Below, piece by piece: positions 9,674 to 36,744 of a stretch of DNA of 64,000 nt. This DNA comes from Chlorokybus atmophyticus (taxonomy: Eukaryota; Plantae; Mesostigma and Chlorokybus algae). The first letter of the stretch is position 1; each line of letters starts with the position of its first letter. The notes under the pieces are model-generated. The model was not told the DNA's origin. It did not search any database and saw nothing but the letters and a program-made list of their open reading frames with translations. The position numbers and the translations under genes are program-made. The stretch is taken from the NCBI GenBank assembly GCA_009103225.1, contig RHPI01003578.1:1-64000 (forward strand). Direction: 5' to 3'.

Positions 9674-10197
9674 TTGGGCGAGAACGGGTTGACGTGATCG
9701 TCTGTGGTGTTGAAAGCCGGTTGTTAGCTGGCAACTGTGGAAGACATCCCGCTGCTCCTGGTATGTGAACCATTTGCCGTCGTATGGCATCAGGTACTCC
9801 TCTGCAAAGTTGCACACAGGTCATCAGTCATAAGCACATGTGTGTACACAAACACATCGCGTATACACGTGCACGCACCATTCGCTATGTCATGGCGGGC
9901 AAACAGTCTCAGTCCAACACCAGTGATCGTGGAGTCCTTGATCTCCCAGTTGTGCAGGTGATATTTAAACTCCTCTTTGACTGGATTGCTTGTGGATGCT
10001 TTCACATCCTTAAAATAGTTCAGCCGCCACAGCTGGTGCTTGTCTCCAGCTCCACGATGGATGAGCTTTAGGTTGGGAATCTTATTGTCAGTTTGTTTGA
10101 AGCAGTGGTCAGTTGCATTGCTTTGAGAGCCACACAGATAATGATAATCTTGCTTGACAGTCCTCTAAGCAGGGTGGGTGGGTGGGTGGGTGGTCAA
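9674..10197 (-). pseudogene. Middle exons of the SET-domain gene (SET N-terminal half), cut by the inversion breakpoint in the upstream intron
   Basis: WEIKDSTITGVGLRLFARHDIANG, an intron GTGCGT..TTGCAG (~9802-9879), then EEYLMPYDGKWF; continues at 4598 across the Copia TSD. Confidence 0.75.
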
Positions 10198-10199
10198 GA

Positions 10200-13100
10200 C
10201 ATGGAGCATACGGATGCAGATGCTACTCATGTATAAAGATCTATGGTCGGTGGTGGATCCCATGGAGCGCCCTCTCGATTTGGAGGATGCACCCACAAAG
10301 AAAAAGTCCAATCAGGCACTTGCGTTGATAGGATTGAATGTGGTATAGCATCACTTAGCGCTTGTTGCACGTTGTAAGTCTGTTAGAGAATTGTGGCAGA
10401 AGTTTTTTAAGGTTTACAAGGCTACAAACAATGCTAGGAAGTTGCAGTTGCGGAAGCAGTGGTATGCTTTGAGAAAGGATGCTGCTGAACCTGTCATAAA
10501 GTTCATCTCACGAGCCAGGCAGCTGTGGGACGACTTGCTTGCCATTGGACATGAAGTGAAGGAGGTGGAGGTGGTCTGGGTCATTCTTGCTGGCTTACGC
10601 AAGGAGTTCGAGATGACTGTCACCATTATGGAGTCAACCAGTGAGGATCTCACCCTCGTGACCATCACCCCACGCCTACTTCAAGTCGAGCAACGCGCAT
10701 CCACTTCACGCTAGGATGAGGCTGAAGATGTGGTATTCGCAACACAATCCAATCCACGTTTCAACAACAACAATGGTGGTGGGAAACAAGAGACGCGTAA
10801 CTGCCACTACTGCGACAAGAAGGACTGTCGAAAGTTGAAGCGCGATCAGCAACAGAAACAAGGTTATGATGGGCATGCTGTAGCACTTGCTGCTAGCACT
10901 ACTACTATTGAGAGCGCTTGGTTGTTGGATTCTGCGTGCACCCAGCATATGACCCCACACAGACATGAGTTCCAGGAATATCATGCTCTGAGCGATGCTG
11001 CTGCTATAAAAGTGAGCTTTGGCAACAAGCTGCACTTGCAAGCTGTGGGAGTGGGCACCGTCATTCGACACACAAAGGTGGCGGGCGCTACACAACAAGT
11101 GGCCCTACAGGAGGTAATCCATGTGCCAGATTTAGCCTCCAGCCTGTTTTTTGTTCGAAGAGCTACAAGCGCGGGCGCCAAAGTTGACTTCACTGCTGCG
11201 AAGTGTCAAGTCAAGGTAAAAACATCACTATTGTGGAGGGCACACTGCTAGGAAGTCTGTATTGCATTAAACTGAACCGGCAGCATGCGATGTCTGCGGC
11301 AATAACTGCATCAGCAACAGCACTTGTATGGCATCGGCGATTCGGGCATCTTGGGTGGGACAACATGGCAAGATTGATGGCTGAAGGCATGGTAATTGGG
11401 ATCAACATACAAGTGGAGGACATGAAAGCAGCAAAAGGTGATCTGTGCGAGACGTGTGTGTTGAGCAAGATGCCTAAGCAAGCCTTTCCCAATTCTTCCC
11501 GCATCAGTATAGCACCCTTGCAGCTTGTACACATGGACGTGTGCGGACCCATGCCAGTTGCATCTGTAGGAAGAAGTTGGTACGTTGCCACTTTCTTAGA
11601 TGACTTCAGCAAGCTATCTGCCATTGTACCTGTTGCTACGAAATCAGATGTTGCTGCTATAGTCAAGAGGACTCTCACTAAACTGGCTACACAAGCAAAG
11701 ACAAAGGTGTTGGCATTGAGAAGTGATCGGGGCGCTGAATACCTCAACCACACCTAGAAGAGCTACCTGGAAGAGCACGGTATCAAGCATGAGACCATTG
11801 CACCTTATACCCCTGAGCAAAACGATGCTGCTGAGCGTCTCGACCGCACACTTGTGGAGCGTGTGCGTGCCATGCTTACAGATGCAAAGCTGAAGAAAGC
11901 TTTATGGGCTGAGGCATTTGTCACGGCCAACTCCATCCGTAACAGGTCACCTACGAGCAACAAAGCCAAGACCCCGTGGGAGTTGTTTCATGGTGAGAAG
12001 CCCGATATTACGCACATGTGTGTACTTGGAGCCAAGGCATATCCGCACATCCCTAAGCACTTGAGGAGGAAGCTGGAGAATGTGAGGGAGACAGGCGTCT
12101 TTGTAGGATATGAGCCCAACTCCAGGGCATACAGGATCTTGCATGAGGACGACAAATTATGGTTCGAAGGGATGTTGTCTTCGACGAGAAGATGGTGGCA
12201 ACAACATTGACAACACCTTCACCAGTTATGGACATTGACATTGCCGATGGGCCGGAGGTCGTCGTCGTACCACTTGTCAATATGGAGGTCCCTGTCAATG
12301 CGCCACACCTCGAGGAGGAAGTGATTGCACCTGTTGAAGAGCAGGAGAGGCGCTACCCTCTACGAACAAGAGCGCCACCACACTTCACCCAAAGGTTTCA
12401 GGCTATGAGCGCTGACATCATTGAGGAGAAAGAGCCGAGCACCTACCGTGAGGCCATCACAGCTCCGGATGCAGAGTTGTGGCGTAATGCCATGGATGAG
12501 AAGATTGCTTCGCTTCACGCCAATAAGACTTGGGCACTTGAGCAGGTTCCACAAGGTGTGAAGCCTATACCTGTCAAGTGGGTGTTCAAGATCAAGTGTG
12601 ACGGCAAGGGCAACATTGAGCGTTACAAGGCGCGACTTGTGGCTAAGGGATTCCTTCAATAGGAGGGAGTTGACTACAAGGAAGTATTTGCACCTGTCAG
12701 GAAGCACACAACTTTTAGAGCATTGCTCGCCAAGGTTGCTGTGGAGGACTTGGAGCTGCATCACCTAGATGTAAAGACTGCCTTCCTCTATGGAGAGTTG
12801 GAGGAACAAATCTTCGTGCAGCAACCTCAAGGGTACGAAGAGGGAGACACAGGCAAGGCATGCTTGTTACATAAGCCTTTGTATGGGCTTAGACAGGCAC
12901 CACGTGTCTGGCACATTCGACTCTGTAATGCCGGTTAATGTGGAATAGGCTAAGAAGGGCTTATGAAGCATTAATAAGCAATACACAACCTCTCATGGTA
13001 GCGACTTTTGCTACCATGGCTTAATCGGCTAAGCCCCGCATTACAGACTCTCAAAGAGCTAGAGAAGATGGGCGTACAGCAGTCTGCAGCAAACCCCGGG

Positions 13101-14446
13101 CTCTTCATCAATGAGAACGGACCAGTCTGGCTACTTGTGTACGTTGACGACATATCCTGGCATTTGCGGATATTGCTGCAATGACCCGAATCAAAGTGAC
13201 ACTGCATTTTGCGTTCGAAATTCGCGATCTTAAAGATGCACACTTGTTCCTCGGTATAGTCATCACCAGGAACAGAGATGCAAAGACCATTAAGATCACA
13301 CAGAAGCAGATGGTGCTGGACTTACTCAAGAAGTTTAAGGTACAGTATGCAAAGGGCAAGGCAACACCACTGAGCGTGGGAGTACAGCTACTCAAGGCAC
13401 GGGACACTACTTTTATACTCGACAAGACTATCCACCTCTACGGTGAGCTAGTAGGAAGTCTCATCTACTTGTCTATTGCTACAAGACCTGACATCGCGCA
13501 AGCCGTGGGAGTCTTGGCGAGGTACATGTTAGCACCCATCATGGAGCACTAGAAGGCGGCAAAAGGAGTTCTTCGCTACCTTGGCAGCACGGCGAACATG
13601 GGTATCATCTTTGGAAAGACGAAAGACATCACACTACATGGCTACTGTGATGCAGACTATGCTGGAGACCTCGACACGAGGAGGTCTACCACAGGTTACA
13701 CTTTCTCGATGGGAGGAGGCGTCATCAGCTGAAACAGTCGACTAAAACCGACTGTTGCTGCGTCCACTATTGAGGCCGAGTACATGGCGGCTTCATCTGC
13801 GATGAAGGAAGCACTGTGGCTTCGCAAGTTGATCACCGACCTTGGGCATGCAACGAGCTGTGTCACCAGTTTATGTGACAACCAAGGAGCACTCAAGCTT
13901 GGCATGCACCCCATCACATCCGCCAGGTCGAAGCATATTGACATCATGCCACATTTGGTGAGAGAGAGAGTTGCACATGGGGAAGTGGAGTTCAAGTACT
14001 GCAGCACTGAGGACATGCTCGCTGACTGCATGACAAAACCACTACCACCAACCAAGTTCCATACGTGCTGCATGGAGCTAGGAGTTAAAGGTAAGTTGCT
14101 CGCGTGGGAGTGTTAAAGGTACGCATGTAGGTGGCGCCTTAGCTAAACTTCTACGATCAACTTATCTTCGGGAGTTATGAAAGTCATGGTCAACGGCCGT
14201 TGCGGGAGTTACGGGAGTTACAGTCAAACTTGGTCAATGTTGACTTTGACCATTGACTTTGACTTTAACTAGTGTTGACTAGTGTTGACTTTGACAGAGA
14301 CTGACTAGTGTTGACTAGTGTTGACTAGCACTCACTAGTGTACTATATAAGACACTGTCTGTTGTGTAATACAATAAGATCCGCTCTTCACTTGTTGGCG
14401 CCACACTTGTGCGTGTGCGTTGTTGCTACTATGCAATCTCTCAATA
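10200..14446 (+). mobile_element. Decayed Ty1/Copia element (family C): gag-pol body and 3' LTR (14111-14446); its 5' end lies inverted at 31658-32115
   Basis: Gag, PR (WLLDSAC), IN (WHRRFGH, DRGAEY), RT ([13 protein letters not shown]) and RH motifs with stops and frameshifts; PPT GCGTGGGAG; TSD CACTT at 14447-14451. Confidence 0.92.
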
Positions 14447-16402
14447 CACTTGTCCTTGGTGTGTGCACACTTGTATGTAAGAGGCAAACACACACACACT
14501 AGGCGCATCACTAGTTTTGAACAGGTTATGGGCCCACACTCGCTTGTGTAATTGCTTGTGCTAGTGAGTAAAAGTGTTGAGCATAGGCACCTACTAGTAG
14601 AGTGTTCTTTGGGAGAGGGTGAGTTGTACTATTGTGTAGCAAGCAATGGCTGACACAGATAGGATGCCCATTGAGTCCCTTGATCTGCACAACTACGCTT
14701 CATGGTCGCTGAAGATGAAGTTGGTGCTCATCCGCAAGAAGCTCTGGAGTTTTGTCGACCCCACCTCCTCCACATCATTGCGGCCAAGAACAGGTGACAC
14801 TGGTGCGTGGACCGAGAACTCGCAATCAGCTGTCGCGCTGATAGGCTTGCACGTCAAAGACTTCCATCTCCCTCTTATTGCGGATGCAAGACTGGACGTT
14901 AGGTGCGGGAGGTCTTCGACACCCTCTCCATGGCCAATAGCGACTCGCGCAAGTTGCAGCTGAGACGCAAGCTGACACTTCGAAAGATGGAGCACAAAGA
15001 GCCAATTCAGAAGTAGTCTCGCGTGCAAGGGAGCTTTGGCAAGACCTTGCAGCAGTGGGCCACAATGTGAAGGAAAAGGAGGTGATATGGGCAGTCTTAG
15101 CTGGCTTAGGAAAGAGCTTTGCTACACTAGTGACTGTGTTGGAGTCCTCCAATGTGGTTTTGAAGTTTGCTGATGTAGTGCCAAAGCTGCTAGCTGTGGA
15201 AGGCAAGTTGGATGTTCAGGAGATACAGAATGGTGGAGAACATATCGCACTTGCTACCTCATCTTTTCAACACACACGCAGCAGGAGCAAAGCAGGTGGT
15301 GGGAAGCCATCACGTGACCAAGAGTGTCACTGCTGCAAGATGAAGGGCCACTTTTTCGCGAGTGCCAGAAGAGGATCTACGATGAGGCAACCAAGGAGAA
15401 GCACGCCACAATGGCGATTGCTTTTTAGCATTGGTGAGGACCTCAAGAAGTTGCAGTGGATGGTGTTCGTCCATCCTCTCCCACTGCAAGGGCGCGTGAA
15501 GGACATGCGTAGACGGAGGTCGCAGACACAAAGGTCTGTGAGAGTTACTACTAGCCTATGAGTAGTGGCTGGTGTTGAGCTGCATACATAGAGGTTGCAT
15601 TGCGGTGGAATTGTTTTTGATAGCACACAGGTGTGCGGTGCTGGTTAGAACACTTCACTTGATTGGCATGCAAGGACTGAGTTGTATAGCTAGCTAACAG
15701 GAGATGGGAGGGGTGCTTTCCTTGGTAGAAGGGTCTAATCAACCCTTGCACGGCCTACACTCTGGCATAGCATTGCTAAGGTAGAAAACTCGGTGTAGTT
15801 TATAGCATATTTTGCCGTTGAGGGAGTCTTTGAAACCACCTGAGCAAGGTCAGGCGTGGTGGAACCTGATGCGACAACTATGAGGAGGAAACAAGGAGTA
15901 TTGGAAGCTGTAGTTCTGCTGGCAGCATAAGGAGAAGGATGGTGTCATGCAGACAAGCATTAAGTCCGTGGGAGCAACACATCCGTGGGAGTGTTCATTA
16001 GAGTAGGTTAATGTGGGTAAGCTTGCGAGAAAAACTTGGAGTTCAAGGTCAAGCTGCTCGCGTGGGAGTGTTAAATGTTATAGCTTGTTGAAAGTACATG
16101 TATAGGCGCCTACATGTAGTTGGTGCGATCAGCTCAACCTTTATAGTTACGGGAGTTACGAGAGGTACGGGAGTTGCGAGAGTTATGGTCAACCATGATC
16201 AACTTTGACTTTGACCGTTGACTTTGACCAGAGTTAACTAGTGCTTAGTAGCATAGTATATAAGACACTGTATATTGCTTGGTACAGTGGATCGCACATT
16301 GTCCCTATAGTTGGCGTGCTTGCTGCACTTGTCCTTAGTGTGTGCACACTTGTATGTAAGAGGCAAATCCACACACACTAGGCGCATCATTAGTTCTCAA
16401 CA
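14447..16402 (+). mobile_element. Gag-only non-autonomous Copia-type LTR element (family A, TR-GAG-like), copy 1; its 5' LTR was interrupted by Copia C
   Basis: LTR tail 14447-14523; PBS GGTTATGGGCCCAC at 14524; decayed gag from 14646 (IESLDLHNYASW..CHCCKMKGH); no pol; PPT; 3' LTR 16069-16402; flank GCCGC at 16403-16407. Confidence 0.9.
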
Positions 16403-18243
16403 GCCGCCGCCGCTCTGGCGCCACCGTTAAGGCAACAGATGCACGCCAATAGTCGAATGGCTGTTAAGTAAGCATACATCAACATGCTTTACCAAAAGCG
16501 GCTATATATGTATAAATTTGATATAGTACAATATTATGCTTGAAAGGATCTTCTCAATGTGATCGACGGCGTCAATTTAACCGGGCATGTGTCAGCAGAA
16601 GCGGGCGCGAAGCTATGTGTGCAATGTTTGTACTGTTTTCTCCCCAACGAAATTCACTACCTGACCACGCTAAAAACATGACAATTGTCTTTGATTAGGG
16701 GCCCCCGATGCAGGGTTTTCGGGGGGCCCTCATCACACAAAAGCACATTCGGGCCCGAACGTGCTTCTCGCTCCCCCCCCCCCCCCCCCCCCCCCCNAAG
16801 TGAATAACCATAGCAAGGGGGGAGTTACTTGACGGGGGTAGTATATCTGCGCGGCGTTACACTGCATCGCGTCATATACGCAATGTAGCTTAACTATGCG
16901 TCGTATTTTGCGCCAACCGGTTGGCGGTATGCGTTAAACACGACGGAAACAGGCTGTGGAGGGGGCGGAGGCAACATTGGTGGCGGCAGTGGTGGCGGTG
17001 GCAATGCCACGGTGACAGTCGTTCCACTAGTGCTCTAAACAACCTATTTGATGTGTATTCATACACGCCTTCACCCTGCAATACACCTCCCCACCCACTC
17101 CGGGGGTGTATTAAGGTAGGGGGGGGGGGGGGGGGNNNNNNNNNNNNNNNNNNNNNNNNNNGGGGGGGATAGGGTTAGATTTGACCAAATACGGTAAGCC
17201 ACCTAATGTGCGTTATAAGGCACATGTTCAATAGAATTAGCCCAAGACTTGTAGGGCAGTCAGAGTTCATTAAAGCCCTCCAGCACACATAAACTCCCTT
17301 GATTGACCATGTATTACGTCATTGCCGGTTTTGCCGTTTTAGCAATCATGTGTTTTGCGGAAACCATCACCGATATTTTTAAGACCCCATTCTTTTTACA
17401 ATCAACGCTATGAAAATTCAGACCATTTGCCTTTTCACGTATTTATTGCATGAATATTCATGCGCTTCTTTATATGCCGTACGATCCCTATCGAACCGGA
17501 ATCGCGTTATTTAAGTATGATTAAAGTACTTATTTACTGCCGTTGGTAAAGTTCATTAGCGTTGCGCAAATCTACAATAGTGCCGTGAAGATAGCGGTTG
17601 TAGTATGCGTTGCATTGGTACATAGCTACACATTTAGATACCATAAATACTCAACTACACTTTATATATTCACAATGAAAAGCCTTGAAGAATCTCCATA
17701 TTTGAGTCTGGTTGAATTGATGACTTTGTATAATGCTATTGCCGTTGCATTTCCAAAAAATCATCAATAGCGGCATGAATATAGCATGCAACAAAAGGCT
17801 GGATCAGCTTTAAGATGTTAACGCACCGCACCAGGCCAGCGGCATGGCCTTGTCTGACGACCAGCTGGGCGCATCCTGTTCGGAGCACCAGGCCAAGCGC
17901 TTGGCCTGATTATTGTGGCATGGTGGCGTGCAGCGACGGCAAGGCCACGCAGGCTGGCCAGGCCTAGCCGCCGGACCAGCGCCGCTGCTCCAGCTGCGCT
18001 TAACCTGGCCTCATGAGGCCTAGCTGGTTGCAACCAGATCAGTCGCTTTGCTTCAACAGCAAAGCGACTGACCTAGTGCCCAACAGGCGGTATTGCTTTG
18101 CTGGCGAAGCAAAGCGTTGCCGCCTGTCGTGCGCAGCACTTGGAGGGCTGAGGGGGTGGGCGTAAGAGGGGGAGGCAGGGGAATTGTACATCTCTACAGG
18201 GGAAGTAGGAGAGCGAGTTCGTTCGGTAGGTGGTTCACAGTGC

Positions 18244-18246
<3 letters not shown>

Positions 18247-18307
<61 letters not shown>

Positions 18308-18533
18308 NNNNNNNNNNNNNNNNNNNNNNNNNNNNNNNNNNNNNNNNNNNNNNNNNNNNNNNNNNNNNNNNNNNNNNNNNNNNNNNNNNNNNNNNNNNNN
18401 NNNNNNNNNNNNNNNNNNNNNNNNNNNNNNNNNNNNNNNNNNNNNNNNNNNNNNNNNNNNNNNNNNNNNNNNNNNNNNNNNNNNNNNNNNNNNNNNNNNN
18501 NNNNNNNNNNNNNNNNNNNNNNNNNNNNNNNNN

Positions 18534-18603
<70 letters not shown>

Positions 18604-18824
18604 CGCGCGAAAGTGACTACATGAATGTGTGTGTACAATCACTCGCGCGCATGCATGCACTATACACATGAGCATGTACACGCATACACCACATTGTGTG
18701 ATTTCGCGTGTTTTAACATAAAATAATGAAGTTACGCTGTGACATGCTACGCTAATTATTTAAAATCATAATATGCGTATATATATATATATATATGTGT
18801 ATATATATATATATGTGTATATAT

Positions 18825-18858
<34 letters not shown>

Positions 18859-18860
18859 AC
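18247..18860. repeat. Microsatellite block: (CT)n spanning an N gap, (CG)n, (TA/TG)n
   Basis: Direct inspection. Confidence 0.95.
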
Positions 18861-18912
18861 ACAGCTTGCCATGCAAGCTAGTGACATGTAGCTTCACAAT
18901 CAACATGCAAGC

Positions 18913-19530
18913 TGTTGAGAACTAGTGATGCGCCTAGCGTGTGTGTATTTGCCTCTTGCATACAAGTGTGCTGACACTAAGGACAAGTGCAGCAAGCACG
19001 CCAACTATAGAGACAATGTGCGATCCATTGTATTAAGCAATGCAGTGTCTTATATACTATGCTACTAAGCACTAGTCAACTCTAGTCAACTCTGGTCAAA
19101 GTCAACACTAGGCGACACTAGTCAATGGTCAAAGTCAATGGTCAAAGTCAAAGTTGATCATAGTTGACCATAACTGCCGTAACTCCCTTAACTCCCGTAA
19201 CTATAAAGGTTAAGCTGATTGTACCAACTACATGTAGGCGCCGCATATACATGTACTTTCAACAAGCTATAACATCTAACACTCCCACGCGAGCAGCTTG
19301 ACCTTGAACTCCAAATTCTTCTCGCAAGCTTACCCACATTAACTTACTCCATTGAACACTCCCACGGATGTATTTTGTTGAAGATTAAGCATATGAGGTT
19401 TGCTAGTATAGTCTAGGCGCATACATGCACACTAGTTCTTAACAGCTTATGGGCCCACACATGCTTAAAGTGTAAGTGTGTTGTGGTCGTGTAGGAAGTT
19501 GGGGTTGCTTAAGGGGAGTAGGTTGCGGGC
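18913..19530 (-). mobile_element. Truncated second copy of the A/B chimeric element: family A LTR 18913-19281, A 3' internal segment, inverted 69-bp family B mini-LTR 19376-19444 with PBS
   Basis: Same junction order and sequence as 36745-37330 but a different flank (CAAGC vs ACAGC). Confidence 0.85.
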
Positions 19531-20331
19531 AAAGCGTTGGATGTGATGATATGTACCCGCCAACTGCCCAGCGACGGCTCTTCACTGTCACATACATGTA
19601 TGAGCAGCAGCTGGCAGACACATACTACCGCGGCGGTCAAAAAATGGCAACAAGACGGCCCTGGATCGATGGATTTCAGAGGGCCTTAATAGAATGTTAG
19701 GGCGTGCTTTGAAACGGCGCAACGCAATGAGGGAAGAGGCAATGGATCCTAGCATGGCTGATTACTGAAAGAAACTCTCAACACCCTGCCACCTTACACA
19801 CTGGCAAATGCTGTTTTGTGGGTGTTGAATCTGGCTCAGCATTGCGCTGCATACGCCCCAGCTAAAAAAGCTCGCGAAATGGGGGGCGACTTTGAGTGAG
19901 CTCAAAGTAGCTCTGGCTCAGCTCGCCGCGCAATAAGGCAGTCATTCTCCGATCCGTCTACCCCTCCGACCTCTTCAATATGCGGCTCCTGCCAGTAACA
20001 CCTAAAGAGGTCGCAATGCGGCAAAGCTTCGAGCACTCCGTCAATAGGTATGATGTCTCGCCATACGGGCAGTGGAAGCCATCATCGCCGAGGGGGGCAC
20101 ACCCACGACGGAACGTGCCCTGCATTAGCAGTTTTTTGACCGCCTAAAATAGCGCTCGCAAGATGCAACCTGGCCTCAAGCATGGCCTTCACCGACCAAT
20201 GTGACAATGTGGGCACAATAGACTCACAACGCCATCAAATAGAACCCAACCCTTGCTTACTCCGTACGCCTTCTTGCCGGGTGAGGATCACAAACGCCTG
20301 AATGACGCAATTCTTAAACATGTGCACGCGC

Positions 20332-23300
20332 TGTAACGGGAGCAATAATAATAGGGGTATTATTGCTACCTGAATAACACATTTTGTATGAATAAGTATT
20401 TAAATATGCTTATTTATACCTCTTTTCTACGGTTCCTCGCTTATTAAAGGCTATGATGCTTTATCATAGCTTAAATAAGTCCCAATGGGTGTAGAACCGC
20501 TTATTCAAGCCTATTTAGTGTCACATTCGATATAATGTGATCACTATCTCGTTAGGTACCTTATGATAGGTATCTTTGGATAGGTACCTTATCGATAGGT
20601 ACCTTATCTGAGCTGTGATTGGCTCACGCTAGATTTCCTAACTACCCTATCTGTAGGGTCGATATCTAGTTGTGAGTTAATTATCGAGAGTTATATAGTT
20701 GATATACTCTTGATATAAAAGGTCACATCAATCTGATGTGGGGACTTTCAGTTATCTGCTCAGTGGCGGCCACGCCGCTGAAAGGCTTGTCATAGGCGGT
20801 GTGGGTATTGGGGTAGAGGATTGAAGGGGCATCACCGGCGACGGTGGTGCTGTTACATTGGTATCGGAGCGCTGGGGGGTGACGTGGGTACTTATAGGGG
20901 GCGGCGACCTGCTTTCGGCCAATCAGAAGCGTCGGCGGCGGCCTCCTATTCGTCCACGCAGCCCAAGCTTCAAGTTCGCTTCCCTGCGCTACCTCCACGT
21001 TGAAGCCACCTATCAAAGAGGCGGCCTCTCCACGTTGAGGTACCATCACACGTCGGTGACTTGCCTGCTTGCCTGCTTGTCAGCTGCTTGCCAGGTGCTT
21101 GCCAAGTGCACGTGTGTACTTTCATGCACATCACACAGTGGCTTGCCAGTGCACTATCATTGCTTGCAGTAATTGCCTGTCATTGCATGCGGTGATTGCG
21201 GCTTGCTAGTGTGCCATCACTGTTTGTCACACTTAGTGCACTGTCATTGCTTGCAGTGATTGCCTGTCATTGCATGCGGTGATTGCTTGTCATTGTGCTT
21301 GCCAGTGCATGTCACAGTTAGTCACCGTGCGGCTTGCCTGTTGCATGCCTGTGGCTTGCCTGTTGCATGCCTGTGACGTACCTGTGACCTGCCAGCGGCT
21401 TTGCCGGGTCGTTTGACCCGGGTCCGTAAGTTTCAAACCAAACTGTTCCCAAACCCTCCCCCTCTGGCTTCGGCCTGGAGATCGGGACTTGGTTAGGACA
21501 GTTGTGGGGAGGTTCTAGGACAATCTGTTCCCAAACCCTGTTAGTCTGAAACCCTCCCCCTCTGGCTTCGGCCTGGAGATTGGGACTTGGTTGAGGACAA
21601 CACAGGGTTAGGACATTCTGGTCCCACTCAGACTTGTTCTGTTTGGTGACACTCCAGATCCAACCTTTCCTATTTTGGGACTGGTTTGGACTCTGTTTGG
21701 GACTTTTACAACTTGGGGTCATTTTGATCCTCTCGTTAAACCTGGTCCATTGGTGAGGTTCTCACCATCCCATTCTGCCTGTTTTGCAGGCAAATGGAAG
21801 AAAACTCGGTGCCCACCTCAAAAGGGGAGAGCTCAGAAAAAGAGCAACTTTCCCGTGAGGAGGAATTTCCATCCATGGAAGATATTCCGAATCCGGATGA
21901 TGCACCTGATGAGTCTCAAGCTGCTAAAGCTGCGGAAGCTTCAGTGGATGATAGATCACCTTCTATATTCCCTGAGTTTTCTATTCGCACGACACAGCAG
22001 GACTTGCTGCAGCATTTCCTTAGCACCTATGATCAGGACCCTCGTGAGGCAATTGTCTCATTCGTGAACTTTCTCTTCCTATTGGCAGAAAAAGTTTCAA
22101 AGCTCACCACCTTTATGGGGCGAGATTGGGAGGGGCAGATGGGTGAAGGCAAACGTGTTCTGAATATGATCGAGCGTCTGCAGCGTGCTGACGGTGGTCC
22201 ACCTGTTCAAGCACTTGCTCGTCCTGCCGAGTTTGTTCCCAACAAGCAAGCGGCCATCTTCGACTGGCTTGTGAAGTTGCGACACTATGTCAACTCCCTT
22301 CACATTTCTGAGGAGGGGAAATTGCGTGTAGCTGAGTTGCTGATCCCAAACGATGCTTTGGCAGAATGGTACCGCCGTAAGCAACGGGATACCAACCTCG
22401 GGCGGGAAGTAAATCAGTTGTGCTTTTTCATGGAGCAGCGATATGGTGGCGCAGATCCTGCCCAGGTTGCTCGCAACCAGCTGCACAACCTGCGTCAGAA
22501 CGGGCGTCCGGTTCAGCAGTATATCCAGGATTTTCAGTCGTTTGTCAGCAAGATCAATGCTGGCAAACTACCTATCAGTGATGCTGATCAGCTGGATATG
22601 TTCAGGCGTGAACTTGTCACAGATCGTGATCCTCGTTTTGTCTCCAAGTTTTGGCGAGAAGTCTGTGAATTGTTGGGGGTAACAAAGCATGTCGACTGCT
22701 TTCCACCCGCAAACGGACGGTCAAACTGAGCGAGCAAATCAAATACTGGAAGAAATGCTTCGCCACTATGTGGCTCCTAATCATGCTGATTGGGACAGGT
22801 ACTTGCCAATGGCAGAGTTCGCTGTGATCAACGCGTGGCAAGAAAGTGTAAAGGAAACCCCATTTTTCTTAAATTATGGGATTCGCCCAAACACACCAGC
22901 GTCATTGCGTGTACCTCGCAATGCCCTGACTGTGCCAGCGGCAAAGGAATTTGCCACTAATATGCAAGAAAATTTGGCTCGAGCCAAGCTGTGTCTGTCA
23001 GAAGCACAGGACAGACAAAAAGCTTATGCTGATACACATCAAAAAATGGCCACTTTCGATGTCAGCGATAAAGTTTTGCTTAATGCAAAAAACATAACCA
23101 TCAAAGGTACGGGTGCTCGCAAGTTGCTGCCCCGATGGTTAGGTCCTTTCTCTAGCATTGATAGAGTTGGTACGCACGCTTATCGACTGCAATTGCCCCC
23201 AAGTGTGCGTATACACAACGTGTTTCATGTAAACTTGTTGAAACCTTACCGCTCAGACGGTAGAACACAGCCTCCACCACCGCCAATTGAGGTGGACAGC

Positions 23301-24157
23301 GAGCTCGAATACGAGGTGGAAGCTATATTGAACCATAAGCTAAATGGTCGAGGACGCGCAACTCGCTATTTGGTGAAATGGAAAGGGTATGGCCCGGAAC
23401 ATAACAGTTGGGAGCCCGACAGGCATCTTACGCACTGCCGCGAGTTGCTTCGAGCTTATTGGGATTCATGTCCTGTCCCATAAACTGTGGGCTTGGTTTT
23501 TATGACAGACTGGCAGTGCAGTTTCATTACCACCCTGTCATTTCCTGCTATCTCACTGGTTACAATTACTCGAAATCAAGCCTGATCAACTTGAGTTCAA
23601 CGAGGACGTTGAAAACCTAAGTGGGGGGGAATGTAACGGGAGCAATAATAATAGGGGTATTATTGCTACCTGAATAACACATTTTGTATGAATAAGTATT
23701 TAAATATGCTTATTTATACCTCTTTTCTACGGTTCCTCGCTTATTACAGGCTATGATGCTTTATCATAGCTTAAATAAGTCCCAATGGGTGTAGAACCGC
23801 TTATTCAAGCCTATTTAGTGTCACATTCAATATAATGTGATCACTATCTCGTTAGGTACCTTACGATAGGTATCTTTGGATAGGTACCTTATCGATAGGT
23901 ACCTTATCTGAGCTGTGATTGGCTCACGCTAGATTTCCTAACTACCCTATCTGTAGGGTCGATATCTAGTTGTGAGTTAATTATCGAGAGTTATATAGTT
24001 GATATACTCTTGATATAAAAGGTCACATCAATCTGATGTGGGGACTTTCAGTTCTCTGCTCAGTGGCGGCCACGCCGCTGAAAGGCTTGTCATAGGCGGT
24101 GTGGGTATTGGGGTAGAGGATTGAAGGGGCATCACCGGCGACGGTGGTGCTGTTACA
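20332..24157 (+). mobile_element. Chromoviral Ty3/Gypsy internal-deletion derivative (gag joined to integrase core/C-terminus and chromodomain)
   Basis: 526-bp LTRs at 20332-20857 and 23632-24157 (4 differences); TSD CGCGC; PBS TGGTATCGGAGC; PPT AAGTGGGGGGGAA; VTDRDPRF..MSTAFHPQTDGQTER; chromodomain EYEVEAIL..YLVKWKGY..SWEP at ~23307-23462; no PR/RT/RH. Confidence 0.95.
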
Positions 24158-25320
24158 CGCGCTCCCACATGATACACATGGTCCCTATGAATATCAAGTT
24201 GTCTCCACAACAATTGATGCGGCTTGGCATCGGAAACGCATATGAAGATCGAGTCCTTTCATTGCATTTTGTCCACGAGTGGAAGGTTCTCAGCCAAAAC
24301 GGCGCGGCGTCATAATGCAAGTGGTAATCAATTTCTCAATTCTTTGGCCGCAGTAGTTTGAGTGCCCGGTCCTACAATATCCGGGCCAAACGCAACATAT
24401 GACTAAGTACCACGGTAAGGGAAAATGCCCCAGCCTAGATTACGGCAAGTTATACACCGCGCGTTATTAAAGTTGTTTGTCTCTAATGACATGCGGTGCT
24501 GAAAGGCACTGCGCTAAAGGCAAGGGCATTTTTTGGCAGCTTTAATGCGGTAAATGGCTAGTGAATGATGACCGCGGCATTGGTTTAAATTGTTTCAATT
24601 GCTGGCTGTATTAAGTCGGCGATTTTTCGATCAATGAGGGCCAGTAATATTGCCCCCTGCGTGGCACGCTGTGGACCTGGTAAATTGCCATATATGACAT
24701 CTCTGGTTATAAAAAGAAAGGCAATGAGACTCAGGATCTTCCGCTCCTAAATAAAATGCAATGTTTGGGACAATCTTCAGGGCATGCATTGGCGTTAAAG
24801 CCATGGGTACGAGCCCAATAATCTTCTTTTGTCTGCCGGATTGCTGATTAGCCACACCAGCTAATCGAGGGGTGGTGGACTACAACATGGCAACAGTGTC
24901 ACCTCTCACACCAGCTTACGATTTCAACGCGTCAGCTTTAAAAGCCGGGCGTGAAGGCACGCGCTCTCAAGCGCGCACATTCACGCAGGAAGCGCAGCGC
25001 TGCGCCGCACTCAGCCCCCTGCGTGCGAGTCGCACGCCACCGGCGTATGCATCACCTTTTCCGAAACTGCTTGCTCCCAGCCAGGTATTGAAAATCCGTT
25101 ACACTCCCCGCCGCAAACATATGTGCATAACAGGCGCATATGCGCAAATAATGATGGAACTCATGCATATCTAGTGGTTGCGTAACACGCTCCGACCTCG
25201 TGTTCAGGTGAGGGGGGGGCACACAGGGTAAGCTCACAGTTGNAAGGCTCGTCGCATTGTGGACTTTTTGACAGACCCACTTTCTCGTCAGTACATGGAC
25301 GCCCTTCGCTGTTCGCCAAA

Positions 25321-25498
25321 CTAGTGGCCGCCACGACCTGCTGAGGGCTTATGGCAATAGGCACGCAATTGCCCCGTCTCCCCACAGTTGTAACAGATGC
25401 GGGCATCGCGCTGGCCCCCCGTAGATGCGGCCTGAGACTGCATATGAGCGGTCTTGTAACTGGGATGCCCCGCACCAGATGCATAAGAGCCAGAGTAG

Positions 25499-25532
<34 letters not shown>

Positions 25533-26220
25533 ACTGGCCCCGCCCCTTGTTGGGAGTGTAGGTCGCCTTTAGCTTGGGCTCGGGCTGCGCCGCAGCTGTT
25601 TCCTTGATTGCCTTCTTAAGGCGCTTTGCCTTTGCATTGTGCGTAGCTAGAGGGTCTCTCGTGAGCTCCTCCACCACCTTCCAGCTATGCTTGTTGGCCA
25701 CTCCCACATGGTGGAACTGCGTGCACACCTCGTCCAATGCTAGTGCACAGAGCACATGTGAGCAACACTGATTGCGGGAATTCATGCATAGGCTCAGAGT
25801 CATTAAGTTTAACGCCAGGCGCACCCGCATTGACACACCATCTCTCACATGCAAATGTAATTGCAAACCTGTTGTGCCTTTTACCTTGCTATGAATAGTC
25901 ATAATGTGAATACAGAGGTGGACATGCAAGGGTGTTAAGTGCGGGCCCTCCCCCACCTACCGGACATGGGGGGAGGAGGGATGCGGAACAATGTATGTAT
26001 ATGGATGCCTCTACGTAGATGACAAGCCCGCACCTTCATAAGGCGGATGATGCACGCATGTGCATGTTTGCATGAGTAAAGTCCGCACCCTCATGCGTGT
26101 CCTACATGTGTGCTCGTGCAAATGGCCATGCTCAACAAAGAATGAGCCACCTTTCATGTTCTCTTTGCGGCCTTTGGCAAAGTGGGGATCCTTGGCGAGG
26201 TGAGACACACTGAATGACGT
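25321..26220 (-). pseudogene. DIRS-type gag fragment (paralog of 45494-47013) with an intron and a CCHC knuckle
   Basis: GVANKHSWKVVEELTRDPLA..AKRLKKAIK (DIRS gag-like motif), CYNCGETGQLRAYC; strong nucleotide similarity to 46200-47010. Confidence 0.75.
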
Positions 26221-26225
26221 CTACG

Positions 26226-26885
26226 GACCATAAATGGTTCGTACCTCTGGACCGGGATTTTCCCCTGCTAAGTGAAATTGGTGGACCATATATGGTCGGA
26301 CTGTCAATAACCATCGGCCCATGCATAGTCCAAACCTCACGTGCACGGTCCCATGTGTGTTTGGGGTCGCACCATGTATGGTGACCTGCTTGTATGAGTT
26401 TGCAAGGACCATGTATAGTGCAATGCCCCCTAGCGCAGAAGACTTGGCATGGTTTGTTACTTCCACATGTCTGATGATTGACATTCGCACCATGCACGGT
26501 CCATGGATACCGACCAGAAGTCTTTGTTTAAACTGACAAATTTCAGACCATGCATGGTGCGCTGCCCTCCTGGCTCAGTGAACCATTTATGGTGCCAGTT
26601 TGATCGACAGTCGCACCATGCACGGTCCATGGATACGGACGTTGTCGTGCATATATGGTCCACAAGCGGTACTATGCATGGTCCTAACAGACAACGCACC
26701 ATACAAGGTCTTATTGACAATCGCACCATGCATGGTCTGTCATGATGTCGCAGCCATTGAAGCCATGCATGGTCTACAAGCGGCACCATGTCTGGTCCTA
26801 ACAAACAACGCACCATGGTCTGATTGACATTCGCACCATGCATGGTCTGTCATAATGTCACAGCCATTGAATCCATGCATGGTCA
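26226..26885. repeat. Array of about 20 palindromic ACCAT-NN-ATGGT motifs (consensus GCACCATGCATGGTC) at ~20-45 bp spacing
   Basis: ACCATAAATGGT, ACCATATATGGT, ACCATGTATGGT, ACCATGCATGGT, ACCATTTATGGT and others; spacers partly related to each other. Confidence 0.85.
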
Positions 26886-27059
26886 TAGCATTGGTGCCTG
26901 CACCGTGCCCGGTGCATACGATCCGACACGCATGCAATTCACAGAAATGTTGTAATAGACTGTGAAACAATAGCCCATCAGTGTCAAGCAAGTGAGATTG
27001 TGGCTACAGTCTCCTACATGCACTTCAAGCTGCGTTACAGGAGGTAACAGGAGCAGCTA

Positions 27060-30000
27060 ACAACATCAGTCTGTTATGTTGCCAGCACCTTCGCCTGGAA
27101 GCTAGACTTGTGCTCTCCCTGGTTGATTCGGCCCCAATGTGAAGACACTCGCGACAGCCTTGTTCAACAGCATCTCTTGCAAACACTCAGCGCGTGCTTG
27201 TTGAGCTCTGCATAACAACTGTACTGTCACGTGCTTACACAAACAGTAACTTGACCATAGCATAGGAAACCACCCACTAATGAGGATGACGAGGGCTGTC
27301 GCATCCACTGCCTCTTGAGTCGGAATGGCTTTCTGTTCTTTGCCTCGCTTAAAAGCCCTGCAGTGTACAAAAACATCACTCTTAAAAACCAGCAAAGGTG
27401 TTGACATACACACGTGCAAGTGACACGCCAACAACATCAACACAAGAGCATGACTGCTACTGCCGCCATAGCATCCGCACACATGCTACATCGTGACCTC
27501 TTATCTTCATTGCAACAAGTCTGGGCTTTATACCCCGCCAGTCTCTACACACGTCTACATTGGCAAGCACCGCGTGCGCTATACTCAACCGATTGCTGTT
27601 CTGTAAGCTACGCTGTCTAGCTTACAACTAGATTTTTTGCAACAAGCTAAGCCACGTCTGCTAAGCTTACGCATCCACGAAGCTACGCGATTTCTCCCAA
27701 GGCTCTACCAAGCAGCCTGGTCCGGAGTCCGTCATGACTCGACCGTCTTGCTAAGTCTGGAGTCCACGCGCTTCTTCCTGGTACCTTCGACCTTCGACTC
27801 CTGTATGAAGGGCAAGCTGACCGGATACAAGCATCACCCATGTAATACCTTCAACAAAAGGACTGTCGTTAACTTGCTGCAGTGAAGTATGCATACCTGG
27901 TAGTTTGCAATTGGATCCCCGCTCGCACCCTCCCTGAACATCTTTGTAGCACACCAACCACTTTTTCCTGGCAGCAAAGCTGACAATAGCTCTTAAGATC
28001 AGCTCGTGTTGCACACGCTCCATTCGGTCGGGGTCATTGAATGCCAGTTGGTGACCATTGTGGAACAGCGTGTGCTCGATGTGGTGGTAGTACTCATACA
28101 TGTCCATTGCCTCCTCTCTGGTGGGGGCGTCGGGCTTGGCGTTGCACACAATCCCCGTTGCAATTCGCAAGTCCATGGCGGCGGAATTTTCATCTTCACA
28201 GTCAGAGATTGCCCCAGCAACCTGCATAGAATCCGGAGTGGTCAGTGCAGTCCATTGGCAACTGTCAATATCATTCATAGTCTGCGATGCGTTGATGACT
28301 GTCAATAACTGCAACATGTAATGCAACTGTCACGGCGTGATCAATGGCTGCATTGGCGGCTGTTCATCACGTAACAGCAGCCTAACAACAGCCCTTATTA
28401 ACCTCTGTGTCTGTGCTATGCCTGGTTGCGGGCGTAGGCAGCCGGTCCTTGATGCAACCCGGCACCGCAATGCGCTCATTGTTAGCGCATGCCTCACAGG
28501 GGCAATGCCTCCGCTGGCCCAGAACATCACGGGCCACTCCATCTCCCTGCTCTGCATGTTGTTGTGTTTTAACATAAGAAATGCTCATGCACTACACCAT
28601 ACAGTCACAGCAGGAGCATGTGCATATCCACATCAAGCAATGTGTCTCCAGAGTACGCCCACCATGGCAGCTGCTTATCGGCATGCCATAGAGAAAATGC
28701 CTTTCTTTCACAGGTAGTTGAACGGCAAGGTTGCCATCCTCACTTCTCTTTGCCATCCACTGGTTAACAGAGACTAGATACGTGCGCATCAATTGGTGTG
28801 GCTCGCATACGGAATCGATGGTGGCGACGCCAACAACTACTGCGTTATTGCAAATGTCGAACACCTAATCTTTAGCATATCCGTCCGCACCCCTGTCGTG
28901 ACACGGACAGTAACATTAAGAGTAGCAGGCACCATGTGTTAAGCCAATATGCATGGAGGCAGCAGCTCAGCAAAACAGTACAACAGGACCGACAGTCGAC
29001 CGCACACAGCACCATGGTTGCTTACCTCTCTTTTAGCCAAGTGGCCCGGAACTGAACATTTGTGAGAGGAGGAGCTGTTAAAGGCGCCAGCGTGACCACC
29101 TGCTGGTTGGCCCTTATGTCCCTCCCAAGACAAAATGTCATACCCCAGCCAGCTCCAGCTTGAGCAGCGCGGCCACCTTGTGCAGCTTCCCTGTCGCTGG
29201 CACGCCTTTGCTTCTTGGCCTCATTGCGTTCTTGGACGCTCTTCCCGGTACCACTACCGCGCTTCGCGCCAATGGAGTACTGCAGCACCAGTACATGGTG
29301 CTTGATTTGTGCTGCAACACAAGCAGATAAGAGTACAGCAAAGTACCAATGGCAATGACTATCAACGTCAAGACAGCTCCAATACAGCAATTTCAGCTGT
29401 TGGAAGATGGCATCTAGCAGAACACAGCCTCAAAAACAGCATATCGCAACTGGTCACTGAATCAACAAGCACAAACACAGCAACCAGGGCAAGGACCGTC
29501 AACGGCAAGACAGCTAAGCAGACAATGAGTGAACTGAAAGCTGAACGACATGCTCAAAAGCTCACTTCAACACAGCTGAATTCAAGTTCCTGTCAAACAG
29601 CAGATGTCACCAAGAAAGCAGCTCACCTGTTGTCCACGTGAGCGTGTGGTTTGCGTCAAAGACCAGTGGAAGTGACTGCTGCAAAACCACCTCACATACT
29701 TCGTCGAGCTCCTGCCGGTGCTTGGCATTCATCTTGAAGTCCTTGCCCTTCATACCTTGAGGTAGTGGCCACTTGCTTAATATCTCCTTTTTCAGCTTCT
29801 CCAGGTTGACTATCAGCGTTGTGCACATATGCTTATACACCTTCTTCATCAAGAACTCCTGGCCTGTCATCAGGCCCAGCAAATGGTTGCCCTTGGTCCT
29901 GAAGCAATCAGCTGCAGCAGGCAGTTGGCTGCCCTCCCCAGTAGCCATAATGTCAGTTGAACAGCCTGAACAAGCAACCTAACTTAGTGCACAGACAGTG

Positions 30001-30523
30001 ACTCAGCGCGCAATCAACAAGGCATGCAAGCTTTAGCAAAACAAACACCTTTTAGGTAAGTGCTGACAGCTCAAGCAGCAAACCACATACGACTAGTGCA
30101 ATTTTTCAAGCAACATACAACCAGGGCGCATGCAAACTCGCAAACAAACTCACTACTCACTCACTAGCACTGTCAAGTCCTACTGTGTTCCATATGGACA
30201 GTCGCACGAGCCGCACAAGCATTGTGACCGCCGCACAAGCCGCAATTGTGCAGTGCCAAATGCAGTGCGACACAGTCAATGGAACCCACAAAGCTAGCAA
30301 CGCGGCTGTCAATCCCTAGACTCACCTTATATATCTGGGGGTTGTCATTTATTAGACGTCGAATTGACGCTAAACGCACTTCTAGCAACAAATTGCGTAG
30401 AGTGTACAAGGCGGCTGTCAAGGGTTAGCAGTGTTAGGGCTAGGGACTCACCAACTTGGCGGCTGTCATTAAAAGGACATCATCGATTGAACAGGAGGTT
30501 GGCGGCGTATATAGCCGTTGCAT
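27060..30523 (-). pseudogene. Multi-exon gene of unknown function, divergent from the SET gene; 3' end uncertain
   Basis: ATG at 30523; GTGAG donors; putative 9-nt microexon 30326-30334 (CAG|ATATATAAG|GTGAG); exon-like ORFs 29607-29948, 29022-29390, 28382-28588 (HCPCEAC) and 27860-28326 (CYKDVQGGCERGSNC). Confidence 0.5.
27399..27856 (-). mobile_element. Solo Copia LTR (family D-related), apparently in an intron
   Basis: TG..CA ends; TSD AAAGG (27394-27398 and 27857-27861); terminus resembles the family D LTR; reverse complement of 52611-53037. Confidence 0.9.
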
Positions 30524-30674
30524 GGTCTCGCTAGTATAGTTTGCTGTTGTTGTGGTTGTGGTGGTTGTGGTTGTGGCTGTGGGTGTAGCTCAGGGCGCAG
30601 GGTGAAGCGAGGAGAGGTGTGAGGAGTTGTACAAGACAGTCGCTTAGAGAAGGATTGCCAGGCAGTTGGACATC

Positions 30675-31655
30675 ATGGAACGAAGGCGGGCGTCTATAGG
30701 GGCGCCGCTTATCTGGGGCTGCCCGTTCAACATGTGCAATGTGCAAGCAGGTCACCGTGATCCAAGGGATCAACCACCTGGGGGAAAGACCAAGCCCACC
30801 AAAATCGGACAGCAATTCAACACGCAGGTGTGCCGATGCGTGCGCATGATCAACAACGGGGGCGGTAGGGAGGACGAGGATGTGTGCACGGGTATGGGGC
30901 TTCAATACCAGCAAGCCACCAAGGTAAGAACGTTTAACAATCAAGATTGTTTACGACATGCATGGGCTGTAAATGCTCATTGCCATGGCGCATCGCGCAT
31001 CGCATTGACAGTCGCTGCTGGGATCCTGTGCATGTCACTTGCTATGCATGATGTTGTTTTGTTCTATCAGCCTAGTTATTAACTTACATTTGTGTGACAT
31101 ATCCCATTGCACGAGAAACTCACCAGCAGCGTATTGCAGAAGGATCAATTCCCGGCCCACCCTCACCCACATGTCACTGTGCTGAAGTACTACAAAATGG
31201 CAAAAGTCATGGCCATCCCAGGATGGGTGAGTTGATGCATTTGTACACCAATTATTGCGGCATGCTTACTTCACCAAGGTTACAGACGCAAGAATTGTGG
31301 GACGAAACGGGACGGCTGTCAAGGCAGTATATCTTTTGATCCGCAATACGCAGTTGGAGGTGGAAGAGGAGCAAGCGGAGCAGGCGCAGCAGCAGGCGCA
31401 GCGGCAGCAGCAACAGCAACAGACGGAAGGAACCGAGGAGGTAGACTCGGAGGAGACTGCAGATGTCTCAACAAGTCCATCATTGCGTAAATCCTCCGCA
31501 CAGCAACGCGGCAAAGGACCTGCGGTGGATCCCAAAGAAGAATTCCGTACAGCTCTTCAAGAATTGCGGAGGTTTAAAGTGAAACGCTACAGTTTCACGG
31601 GCACCACACAGCCATCCAACCTATCGGACGATATCTTGAGGGTAAGCATAGGTCA
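30675..31655 (+). pseudogene. 5' exons of the SET-domain gene, displaced by the inversion
   Basis: Exons end at GTAAG (~30925), GTGAG (~31227) and a phase-0 GTAAG at 31642; the last intron is cut at 31656-31657 and resumes on the minus strand at 10197. Confidence 0.6.
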
Positions 31656-31657
31656 TC

Positions 31658-32395
31658 CCATAATTATCCAGGTCCAGTGGTTCGATAATCACCAAGTCGT
31701 AGCTGGTCGCCATGCTTCCTTAGCTAGCCTGCAATGAAGACGGCGCCTCCCCAAGCTATACCAACTTGTGTGTGCTATGCTAGCGCTCGTGAGGACCCAT
31801 AACTTATTAAGAGATTGTACAGTAGCAATGATGCACACGCACAAGTGTGGCGCCAGTAAGTGAAGAGCGATCTTACTGTACTACACAACAGACAGTGTCT
31901 TATATAGTACACTAGTGAGTGCTAGTCAACACTAGTCAACACTAGTCAAAGTCAAAGTCAATGGTTAAAGTCAAAGTCAAAGTTGACGTTGACCAAGCTT
32001 GACTATAACTCCCGTAACTCCCGTAACGGCCGTTGACCATAACTTCCATAACTCCCGAAGATAAGTTGATCGTAGAAGTTTAGCTAAGGCGCCACCTACA
32101 TAGGTACCTTTAACAAAGTGCAACAAGCACGCCAACTATAGAGACAATGCGCGACCCACTGTATTAAGCAATATACAGTGTCTTATATATTATGCTACTA
32201 AGCACTAGTCAACTCTAGTCAACTCTGGTCAAAGTCAACACTAGTCAATGGTCAAAGTCAACGATCAAAGTCAAAGTTGACCATCGTTGACTATAACTCC
32301 CATAACTCCCGTAACTATAAACATTAAGCTAATCATACCAACTACATGTAGGCGCCGCCTATACATGTACTTTCATCAAGCTATAACATTTAAGA
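31658..32395 (-). mobile_element. Inverted 5' end of the nested C-in-A complex: gag start (ATG 31713), PBS, Copia C 5' LTR 31805-32115, TSD CACTT (32116-32120), first part of family A 5' LTR 32121-32395
   Basis: MATSYDLVIIEPLDLDNYG joins in frame to TWSIRMQMLL at 10199; outer flank 32396-32400 reads GCCGC on the minus strand, matching 16403-16407. Confidence 0.92.
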
Positions 32396-32829
32396 GCGGC
32401 GGCGGTGACGAGGTTACGAGTGAGAAGTGAGCTGGTTGCGTGGTTGTGGGAGTGTCAAAGAAATTTTGCATTTAATGCACACAACACACATACATACACA
32501 TTGAGTGCGGATGATGGCTTGCGTGACTACACAATGCAGACAGGGACGCCTCTAGCCACGACAGCAGTGTTGGTCATGGCGGCATTGTGGGCGGCAACGG
32601 CTTTTTTCTATAGGTACTGTCCTGCACCTCCTCCCCTCATTGCCCACCCTGTTTTAGCCAACACTACCGCATTGGCACTGTCTACAACTTTGCACAGCAC
32701 TCTTGACTTGTTCTTCCAAGCTCTCTTCTCTGCCCCTGCCTTTGTGCACAGGTAAGTGGTGGTGCTGGAGTAGCACATGAGCATTGACACGCACGAAATC
32801 TATATTGTAATGTACAAACACAGTGTTTA

Positions 32830-36433: not shown

Positions 36434-36744
36434 TTTAATGATGATGTGGTTGAAGTGTTAGCATTTGACACTAAGCAACGATGACTATGTGCTAGCATTA
36501 GCCCAGTGGGCTTTGAGTATAGAGATGTGTAGCAATTGCTGTGCTTGCTTGTTTTGTTTGTATAAGCAGCTGAGGAGATGTCAGTCATGTGCTGCAACAT
36601 GTTGTGACATGCATGTATTGGCCATATTGGTAAAAAGCATGTGAAGTATAATACCCGTATCACTTGCCCGCCGTGTTCAATACCGTGTGTATATATTGCG
36701 CTACCATGCGTGTTGCCGCATTTTCAATCAGACTTGGTTACAGC

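Follow-up and report, generated by a model that had tools for sequence, protein, structure and literature searches.

Positions 10198 to 31657 of contig RHPI01003578.1 from the alga Chlorokybus atmophyticus (assembly GCA_009103225.1) raise the question of whether about 21.5 kb of this genome was turned around after two long terminal repeat (LTR) retrotransposons, element B and Copia C, had inserted there. We analyzed the first 64,000 nt of the contig on the forward strand (hereafter the window), which is transposon-dense and eukaryotic, with about 50% G+C. An earlier reading of the same letters (hereafter the original prediction) had proposed a base-precise inversion of 10198-31657. We found that reversing this segment restores Copia C, element B and both of their 5-bp target-site duplications (TSDs), features that are now split on both sides of it. 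The arrangement is probably real, a paracentric micro-inversion of about 21.5 kb that arose from two double-strand breaks and end joining after the insertion of B and C, and it is very likely that both junctions are real and not artefacts. The core of this reading, namely one inversion of about 21.5 kb with two breaks and no homology, later than both LTR insertions, was supported by every test run.

Flipping the segment restores two nested retrotransposons

As the sequence stands, the two LTRs of Copia C are in inverted orientation and face each other (Table 1). Element B, an LTR element of about 2.3 kb with a Copia-type gag remnant, is likewise present in two pieces, and an intact copy of it lies at about 41800-44080. 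The 3ʹ part of the split copy was 96% identical to the intact one at 42079-43865. On the intact copy, the 5ʹ piece (32219->32116, minus strand) ends at 42083 and the 3ʹ piece (14447->) starts at 42079. The two halves overlap by exactly 5 bp, CACTT, which is the TSD of Copia C, so the original prediction was right to read CACTT at 14447 (+) and 32116-32120 (-) in this way. The TSD proposed for B itself, GCCGC at 16403 (+) and 32396-32400 (-), was also present on both sides; it lies in a (GCC)n context and is weak evidence alone. Three nested markers agree on the flipped topology of 10198-31657, and they give the order of events as B, then C, then the inversion, which is the timing that had been proposed.

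Table 1. Positions of the inverted segment, its junctions and the surrounding features in the window.
Feature	Position	Strand	Remarks
Inverted segment	10198..31657		Nominal 21,460 nt including 254 N; both retrotransposons and their TSDs are whole again when it is flipped
Left junction dinucleotide GA	10198..10199	+	Copia C gag codons 19 and 20, by alignment with Copia A
Right junction dinucleotide TC (GA on minus)	31656..31657	+	Intron-derived or duplicate of the Copia GA
Copia C 3ʹ portion	10198..14446	+	gag codon 19 through beta-barrel domain, integrase and reverse transcriptase; several stops and frameshifts
Copia C 3ʹ LTR	14111-14446	+	
Copia C 5ʹ portion	31658..32115	-	5ʹ LTR 32115-31805, leader, gag codons 1-18 plus 2 nt (31713-31658)
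TSD CACTT of Copia C, 3ʹ side	14447..14451	+	
TSD CACTT of Copia C, 5ʹ side	32116..32120	-	
Element B 3ʹ part	14452..16402	+	Rest of 5ʹ LTR, internal region with Copia-type gag remnant, 3ʹ LTR
Element B 5ʹ part	32121..32395	-	Initial ~275 nt of the 5ʹ LTR
TSD GCCGC of element B, 3ʹ side	16403..16407	+	
TSD GCCGC of element B, 5ʹ side	32396..32400	-	
Putative upstream exon	31255..31641	+	Frame open up to a GTAAGC donor (31642), phase 0; cut off from SET exons
Putative first downstream exon	9880..10065	-	62 codons, phase 0, AG at 10067-10066; N-terminal SET-like look, without profile confirmation
Exon with SET-domain C-terminal motif	4340..4480	-	Pfam PF00856, 23.3 bits against a cut-off of 22.4
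(GGGT)5.5 array, canonical G-quadruplex motif	10172..10193	+	Ends 4-6 nt before the break
Copia A	4599-9668	-	Young, apparently intact; LTRs differ at 3/402 sites; TSD GTTTT
Assembly gap	17136..17161		26 N inside poly-G run; 17 G left, 7 G right
Assembly gap	18308..18533		226 N inside (CT)n; 30.5 copies left, 27.5 right, same strand

The Pfam domains of Copia C follow in the order Retrotran_gag_2, Pol_BBD, gag_pre-integrs, rve, SH3_retrovirus and RVT_2. On these sequence features, that is, its LTRs, 5-bp TSD and domain order, the element was confirmed as a Ty1/Copia LTR retrotransposon. Between its LTRs, 23 of 311 aligned positions differ, in addition to several indels, and Copia C is therefore old. 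The differences comprise 21 transitions and 2 transversions, and such a transition-rich divergence suggests decay of a methylated element by cytosine deamination.

The B family has at least five copies in the window, counting elements of about 2.3 kb and solo LTRs (14447-16402, 32121-32395, 41800-44080, 38766-40271, 18911-19530 and 36742-37349). The LTRs of B and of Copia C have a block of about 130 nt in common, with short repeats of the GTCAA type and 80-88% identity. Elements of the Copia C type may thus have in B a non-autonomous partner.

The gag gene of Copia C is split without loss of a base

The break in Copia C falls in codon 19 of gag, and Copia A, a second Copia element in the window, could be compared with it. 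The 5ʹ piece of the Copia C gag (minus strand, 31713-31660) is MATSYDLVIIEPLDLDNY, and the 3ʹ piece (plus strand, from 10199) is TWSIRMQMLLMYKDLW... / TWSIRMQMLLMYKDLWSVVDP. A glycine codon is split between them, with two bases at 31659 and 31658 and the third at 10198. Over the same stretch the gag of Copia A is MEVSYDKGLITKLDTNNYSTWCVEMKALL / MEVSYDKGLITKLDTNNYSTWCVEMKALLIHKKMWKYVDP, which is colinear with the two pieces of Copia C residue for residue, without an indel. In the DNA alignment, 8992->8925 of Copia A corresponds to 31732->31661 of Copia C and 8920->8854 to 10199->10265, and the 4 nt of Copia A left between the aligned blocks correspond to 31660-31658 plus 10198. The Pfam profile DUF4219 gave the same numbering: residues 13-38 of the Copia A gag match profile positions 1-26, and the 3ʹ piece of Copia C begins at position 8, as expected if the 5ʹ piece supplies positions 1-7. 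The 20-aa 5ʹ piece gave no Pfam match when searched by itself, being too short. A metagenome scan with the Copia C gag found one degenerate locus, 44% identical, in which the N-terminus of gag was unreadable.

The in-frame gag join across the break, as originally proposed, is thus borne out by colinearity with Copia A in protein and DNA and by the DUF4219 numbering. The further claim that no bases were lost or gained holds for the Copia side on the same alignments, and may hold for the intron side.

The junctions share two base pairs

The left junction reads ...GGTCAA-GA-CATGG... and the right junction, on the minus strand, ...TATGG-GA-TGACC.... The dinucleotide GA is present at both, though Copia C requires it once only, and within GA/TC the breakpoints may be placed up to 2 nt to either side. 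A comparison of the 400-nt junction regions gave a local score of 11 (shuffle mean 10.6), and in-register identity was limited to 2 bp. Because the two regions share no homology, recombination between inverted repeats and misassembly driven by shared k-mers are excluded. The absence of Ns and of long homology at the junctions, noted in the original prediction, was confirmed, with homology of at most 2 bp and the Ns kilobases away. Neither junction carries a transposon end: one break falls within an intron and the other within the gag gene.

A crossover within a 2-bp GA/TC overlap had also been proposed. The shared 2 bp were seen, but the overlap is only one of three readings that are equally compatible with the junctions. 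The intron may have had TC, with a blunt join or a join on 2 bp of microhomology and no loss. A 2-nt stagger in Copia C may equally have been filled in, which would leave a 2-bp inverted duplication of GA. The third, equally compatible, is a small indel at the intron or an addition of 2 nt, by chance or templated. By our calculation, a random blunt join has a microhomology of exactly 2 bp with a probability of 3 x (1/16) x (9/16), about 10.5%. No special enzyme is needed.

The pentamer GGTCA adjoins both junctions on the plus strand (31651-31655 and 10192-10196). The un-inverted intron would have had a 5-bp inverted repeat, GGTCA..TGACC, around the break, which we take as probably due to chance.

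The second break interrupts a putative SET-domain gene

The inversion splits Copia C and would separate the upstream part of a putative SET-domain gene of the host from its SET-domain exons. Followed down the minus strand from 10197, the sequence contains the (GGGT)n array in complement, then an AG, the 62-codon exon and a further exon, and the terminal SET exons lie beyond Copia A. The match to PF00856 covers only the C-terminal 23 residues of the SET domain, the remaining exons being too short, or having diverged too far, for a match. By the logic of the inversion, positions 10197 and 31657 would formerly have been adjacent, and the splice signals and phases on the two sides are compatible with one intron of about 148 nt. 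The split intron of the original prediction is consistent with the donor GTAAGC, the acceptor AG and the matching phase 0, while the ancestral intron sequence was not recovered. The open reading frame (ORF) at 31255-31641 and the SET exons would then be parts of one gene.

Searches for relatives of this gene were negative. The 62-codon exon had no match in Pfam, where single SET exons are too short for matches. HMMER with the same 62 residues against 1.84 billion representatives gave four matches and no orthologue, the two that were inspected both being repeat-protein noise. A metagenome scan with this exon gave 526 pattern matches, none of them confirmed. A word-index protein search with the ORF crossing the right junction found no matches, and tblastx found no SET paralogues within the window.

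Copia A has inserted into this putative gene as well, at 530 bp from the left junction, so that the gene would have been hit twice.

A G-quadruplex motif lies beside the intron break

The (GGGT)n array near the intron break (Table 1) is unique in the window, and no such array is expected there by chance. The 64 kb contain 12 G-quadruplex (G4) motifs, and of two breaks placed at random, one would lie within 10 nt of a motif in about 1.8% of cases. In Caenorhabditis elegans, junctions induced by G4 motifs map at the motif or within 3 bp of it (PMC4654259). The motif in the intron may have had a role in the break.

Inversion or assembly artefact

Several points weigh against the reconstruction. 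The continuity of the segment hangs on the two assembly gaps, whose lengths are nominal only, so that the size of the segment is approximate. The ORF at 31255-31641 is linked to the SET exons by splice signals and matching phase only. Protein and metagenome searches yielded no orthologous locus and no un-inverted allele that could serve as a reference for the inversion or the intron. Finally, the G4-associated events in the literature are deletions and not balanced inversions, and the proximity of the G4 motif was noticed post hoc.

An assembly artefact, in which an un-inverted genome was represented by chimeric contigs or by a segment mis-oriented in scaffolding, is unlikely, and it is the alternative that survives best. 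The assembly does have gaps, two of them inside the segment, the region is repeat-dense, and independent sequence was not found in the searches made. Runs of N in the window are at 6675 (1 N), 16797 (1), 17136-17161, 18308-18533, 25243 (1) and 56446-56561. Those nearest to the junctions are 6675 and 16797 for the left and 25243 and 56446 for the right, at distances of at least 3.4 kb. Both junctions, however, lie in continuous sequence, 3.4-6.6 kb from the nearest N, and a flip in scaffolding cannot create them; mis-orientation of a scaffold was rejected on the ground that the breakpoints do not coincide with contig ends or N gaps. The junctions share 2 bp only, which leaves no repeat or k-mer to mislead an assembler, and it is very improbable that two chimeras arose independently and yet mirror each other base for base. 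The gaps themselves look like unread simple repeats. The orientation of their flanks is consistent across both gaps, because the same simple repeat stands on the same strand on both sides; had a contig been flipped at the CT gap, AG would be expected opposite CT. No reading frame crosses either gap.

Long homopolymers are present at 16773-16796 (C24), 17119-17168 (G17, then G7), 25500-31 (G32) and 56427-45 (G19). Three long G/C homopolymers border an N or a gap, and they appear to be where the assembly breaks. The lone N at 16797 ends the run of 24 C, whereas the one at 25243 lies in ordinary sequence. The C24 and the G run are about 320 nt apart, in inverted orientation.

Proposed course of events and rival mechanisms

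Element B, a gag-only Copia derivative, inserted first (TSD GCCGC), and Copia C then inserted into the 5ʹ LTR of B (TSD CACTT) and aged there. We propose that two double-strand breaks on the same chromosome followed, one in the intron of the SET gene, 4-6 nt 3ʹ of (GGGT)n, and one in codon 19 of the Copia C gag. The four ends would have been rejoined in flipped order independently of homology, either by classical non-homologous end joining (NHEJ) or by end joining that used no more than 2 bp of microhomology. There is good documentation of inversions that arose from breaks and NHEJ (PMC1885836), and breaks with end joining are, from the junctions, the mechanism that we infer here.

An improbable variant is that the breaks were not random. 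The event would have begun with blocked replication or cleavage at (GGGT)n in the SET intron, or both sites would have been cut by an enzyme (meiotic Spo11-type or a recombinase) that leaves overhangs of 2 nt. The balanced exchange would then be due to ligation of matching GA/TC overhangs instead of fortunate blunt joins. We give slightly less credit to template switching of the kind called FoSTeS (fork stalling and template switching) or MMBIR (microhomology-mediated break-induced replication), or to polymerase-theta end joining, at a stalled fork, perhaps at (GGGT)n. The 2 bp of microhomology that it would use are present, and a G4 motif stands 4-6 nt from one break, in line with the C. elegans junctions that adjoin such motifs (PMC4654259). 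Its usual products are, however, duplications, deletions or templated insertions, whereas at this locus no base on the Copia side was lost or gained and the two reciprocal products both exist. A match of 2 bp is within chance expectation.

Still less probable is an enzyme making a 2-nt stagger, such as a serine-type recombinase or a Spo11/topoisomerase VI-like protein, followed by exchange or fill-in, with GA as the 2-bp core or as an inverted duplication. GA does stand at both junctions where Copia C needs it once, and the model that prevails for inversions in Drosophila is one of staggered breaks that are filled in (PMC1885836). Against this, no site sequence is shared around the dinucleotide, the Copia site is without dyad symmetry, and blunt breaks would give such a pattern in about 10% of joins made at random. 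No recombinase gene was found when 33 ORFs and ORF pieces were scanned with Pfam, a set that did not exhaustively cover short ORFs, and none of the 33 matched a serine or tyrosine recombinase. The scans returned only retroelement domains, PHD, weak matches to SET and a single weak match to eIF3_N below threshold. The comparison with serine recombinases made in passing in the original prediction was therefore dropped, as the sites share only the dinucleotide and no recombinase was among the scanned frames.

We regard as very improbable a larger or more complex rearrangement with real junctions and an interior mis-joined at the gaps. The junctions are indeed connected only through 17136-17161 and 18308-18533, but the simple repeat to the left of each gap resumes to its right without a change of strand, as in an incompletely read repeat and unlike a join of unrelated contigs. 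Non-allelic homologous recombination (NAHR) between inverted repeats was rejected for want of inverted homologous repeats spanning both breakpoints, an invertible segment of a serine recombinase for want of dyad-symmetric half-sites, the sites sharing only the dinucleotide, and inversion by alternative transposition for want of a transposon terminus at either junction.

Other repeats in the window

The reverse transcriptase ORF of the intact Copia in the window had its best named relatives in the green algae Tetradesmus and Chlorella (55-58% identity), and its best unnamed match was a metagenome protein (83%). Judged by this transposon protein alone, the host would be placed among the chlorophytes. 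Inside the inverted segment, at 20332-24157, is a 3.8-kb Ty3/gypsy element of chromovirus-like type, whose 526-nt LTRs differ at 4 sites. It has gag and an integrase SH3 plus chromodomain, with no reverse transcriptase among the two long ORFs scanned, and is probably an internally deleted, recently inserted copy.

Two pairs of segments, 25343-26163 with 46235-46993 and 27523-27857 with 52610-52942, are 78-89% similar. One copy of each pair is inside the inverted segment and the other outside; they are now in inverted orientation and stood in direct orientation before the inversion. They are probably fragments of another retroelement, and the copy at 25.3 kb has an ORF with a CCHC knuckle. A tandem duplication of 91 nt at 37997-38180 (92% identity) repeats the stretch of a Copia-type gag that codes for the CCHC zinc knuckle. 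At 243-548, within long ORFs on the plus strand, lies a 26-nt tandem repeat with 11.8 copies and 85% matches. Scans of the window for tRNA genes and Rfam families found nothing.

Comparison with known classes of inversion

Nested transposons acted here as built-in markers, and through them the inversion, its breakpoints and the order of events could be resolved at the level of single bases with no need of an outgroup. Provided that it is real, the inversion offers a ready polymerase chain reaction marker for comparing strains and populations of this alga, and documents the loss of a SET-domain gene and a homology-independent inversion in a lineage in which few breakpoints have been described.

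The locus resembles inversions made by ectopic recombination between transposon copies in that the region is full of inverted LTR copies, but its breakpoints lie outside repeats and are without homology. DNA invertases of the Hin/Gin type, which are serine recombinases, use a 2-bp crossover. The identical non-palindromic dinucleotide at the center of both junctions is formally compatible with them; here, however, the setting is eukaryotic, and neither related half-sites nor a recombinase gene was found in the scans above. Inversions by alternative transposition of Ac/Ds in maize likewise break genes in a transposon-rich region (PMC8225341), but they have a transposon terminus at the junction, whereas both breaks here are internal. 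Breakage at G4 motifs with repair by polymerase theta (Lemmens et al. 2015, PMC4654259) is similar in having a junction a few nucleotides from the 3ʹ end of the motif and minimal microhomology; its outcome is a deletion of 50-300 bp, in contrast to the balanced 21-kb inversion here.

Two classes come closer. Homology-independent two-break inversions and staggered-break inversions dominate in Drosophila (PMC1885836). Staggered breaks (Ranz et al. 2007, PMC1885836) would leave the same dinucleotide inverted at both junctions, as a filled-in stagger gives and as GA is found here, but the duplications in Drosophila have a median of about 321 bp, against at most 2 bp here, a length indistinguishable from microhomology. 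The clean two-break NHEJ inversions of Drosophila, human and plant have repeat-free breakpoints, 0-2 bp of microhomology and reciprocal junctions, with genes and transposons simply cut, and nothing essential differs here, except that the ancestral state comes from nested transposons and not from an outgroup. The inversion in C. atmophyticus is probably of this ordinary, homology-independent two-break kind, and reveals no new mechanism.

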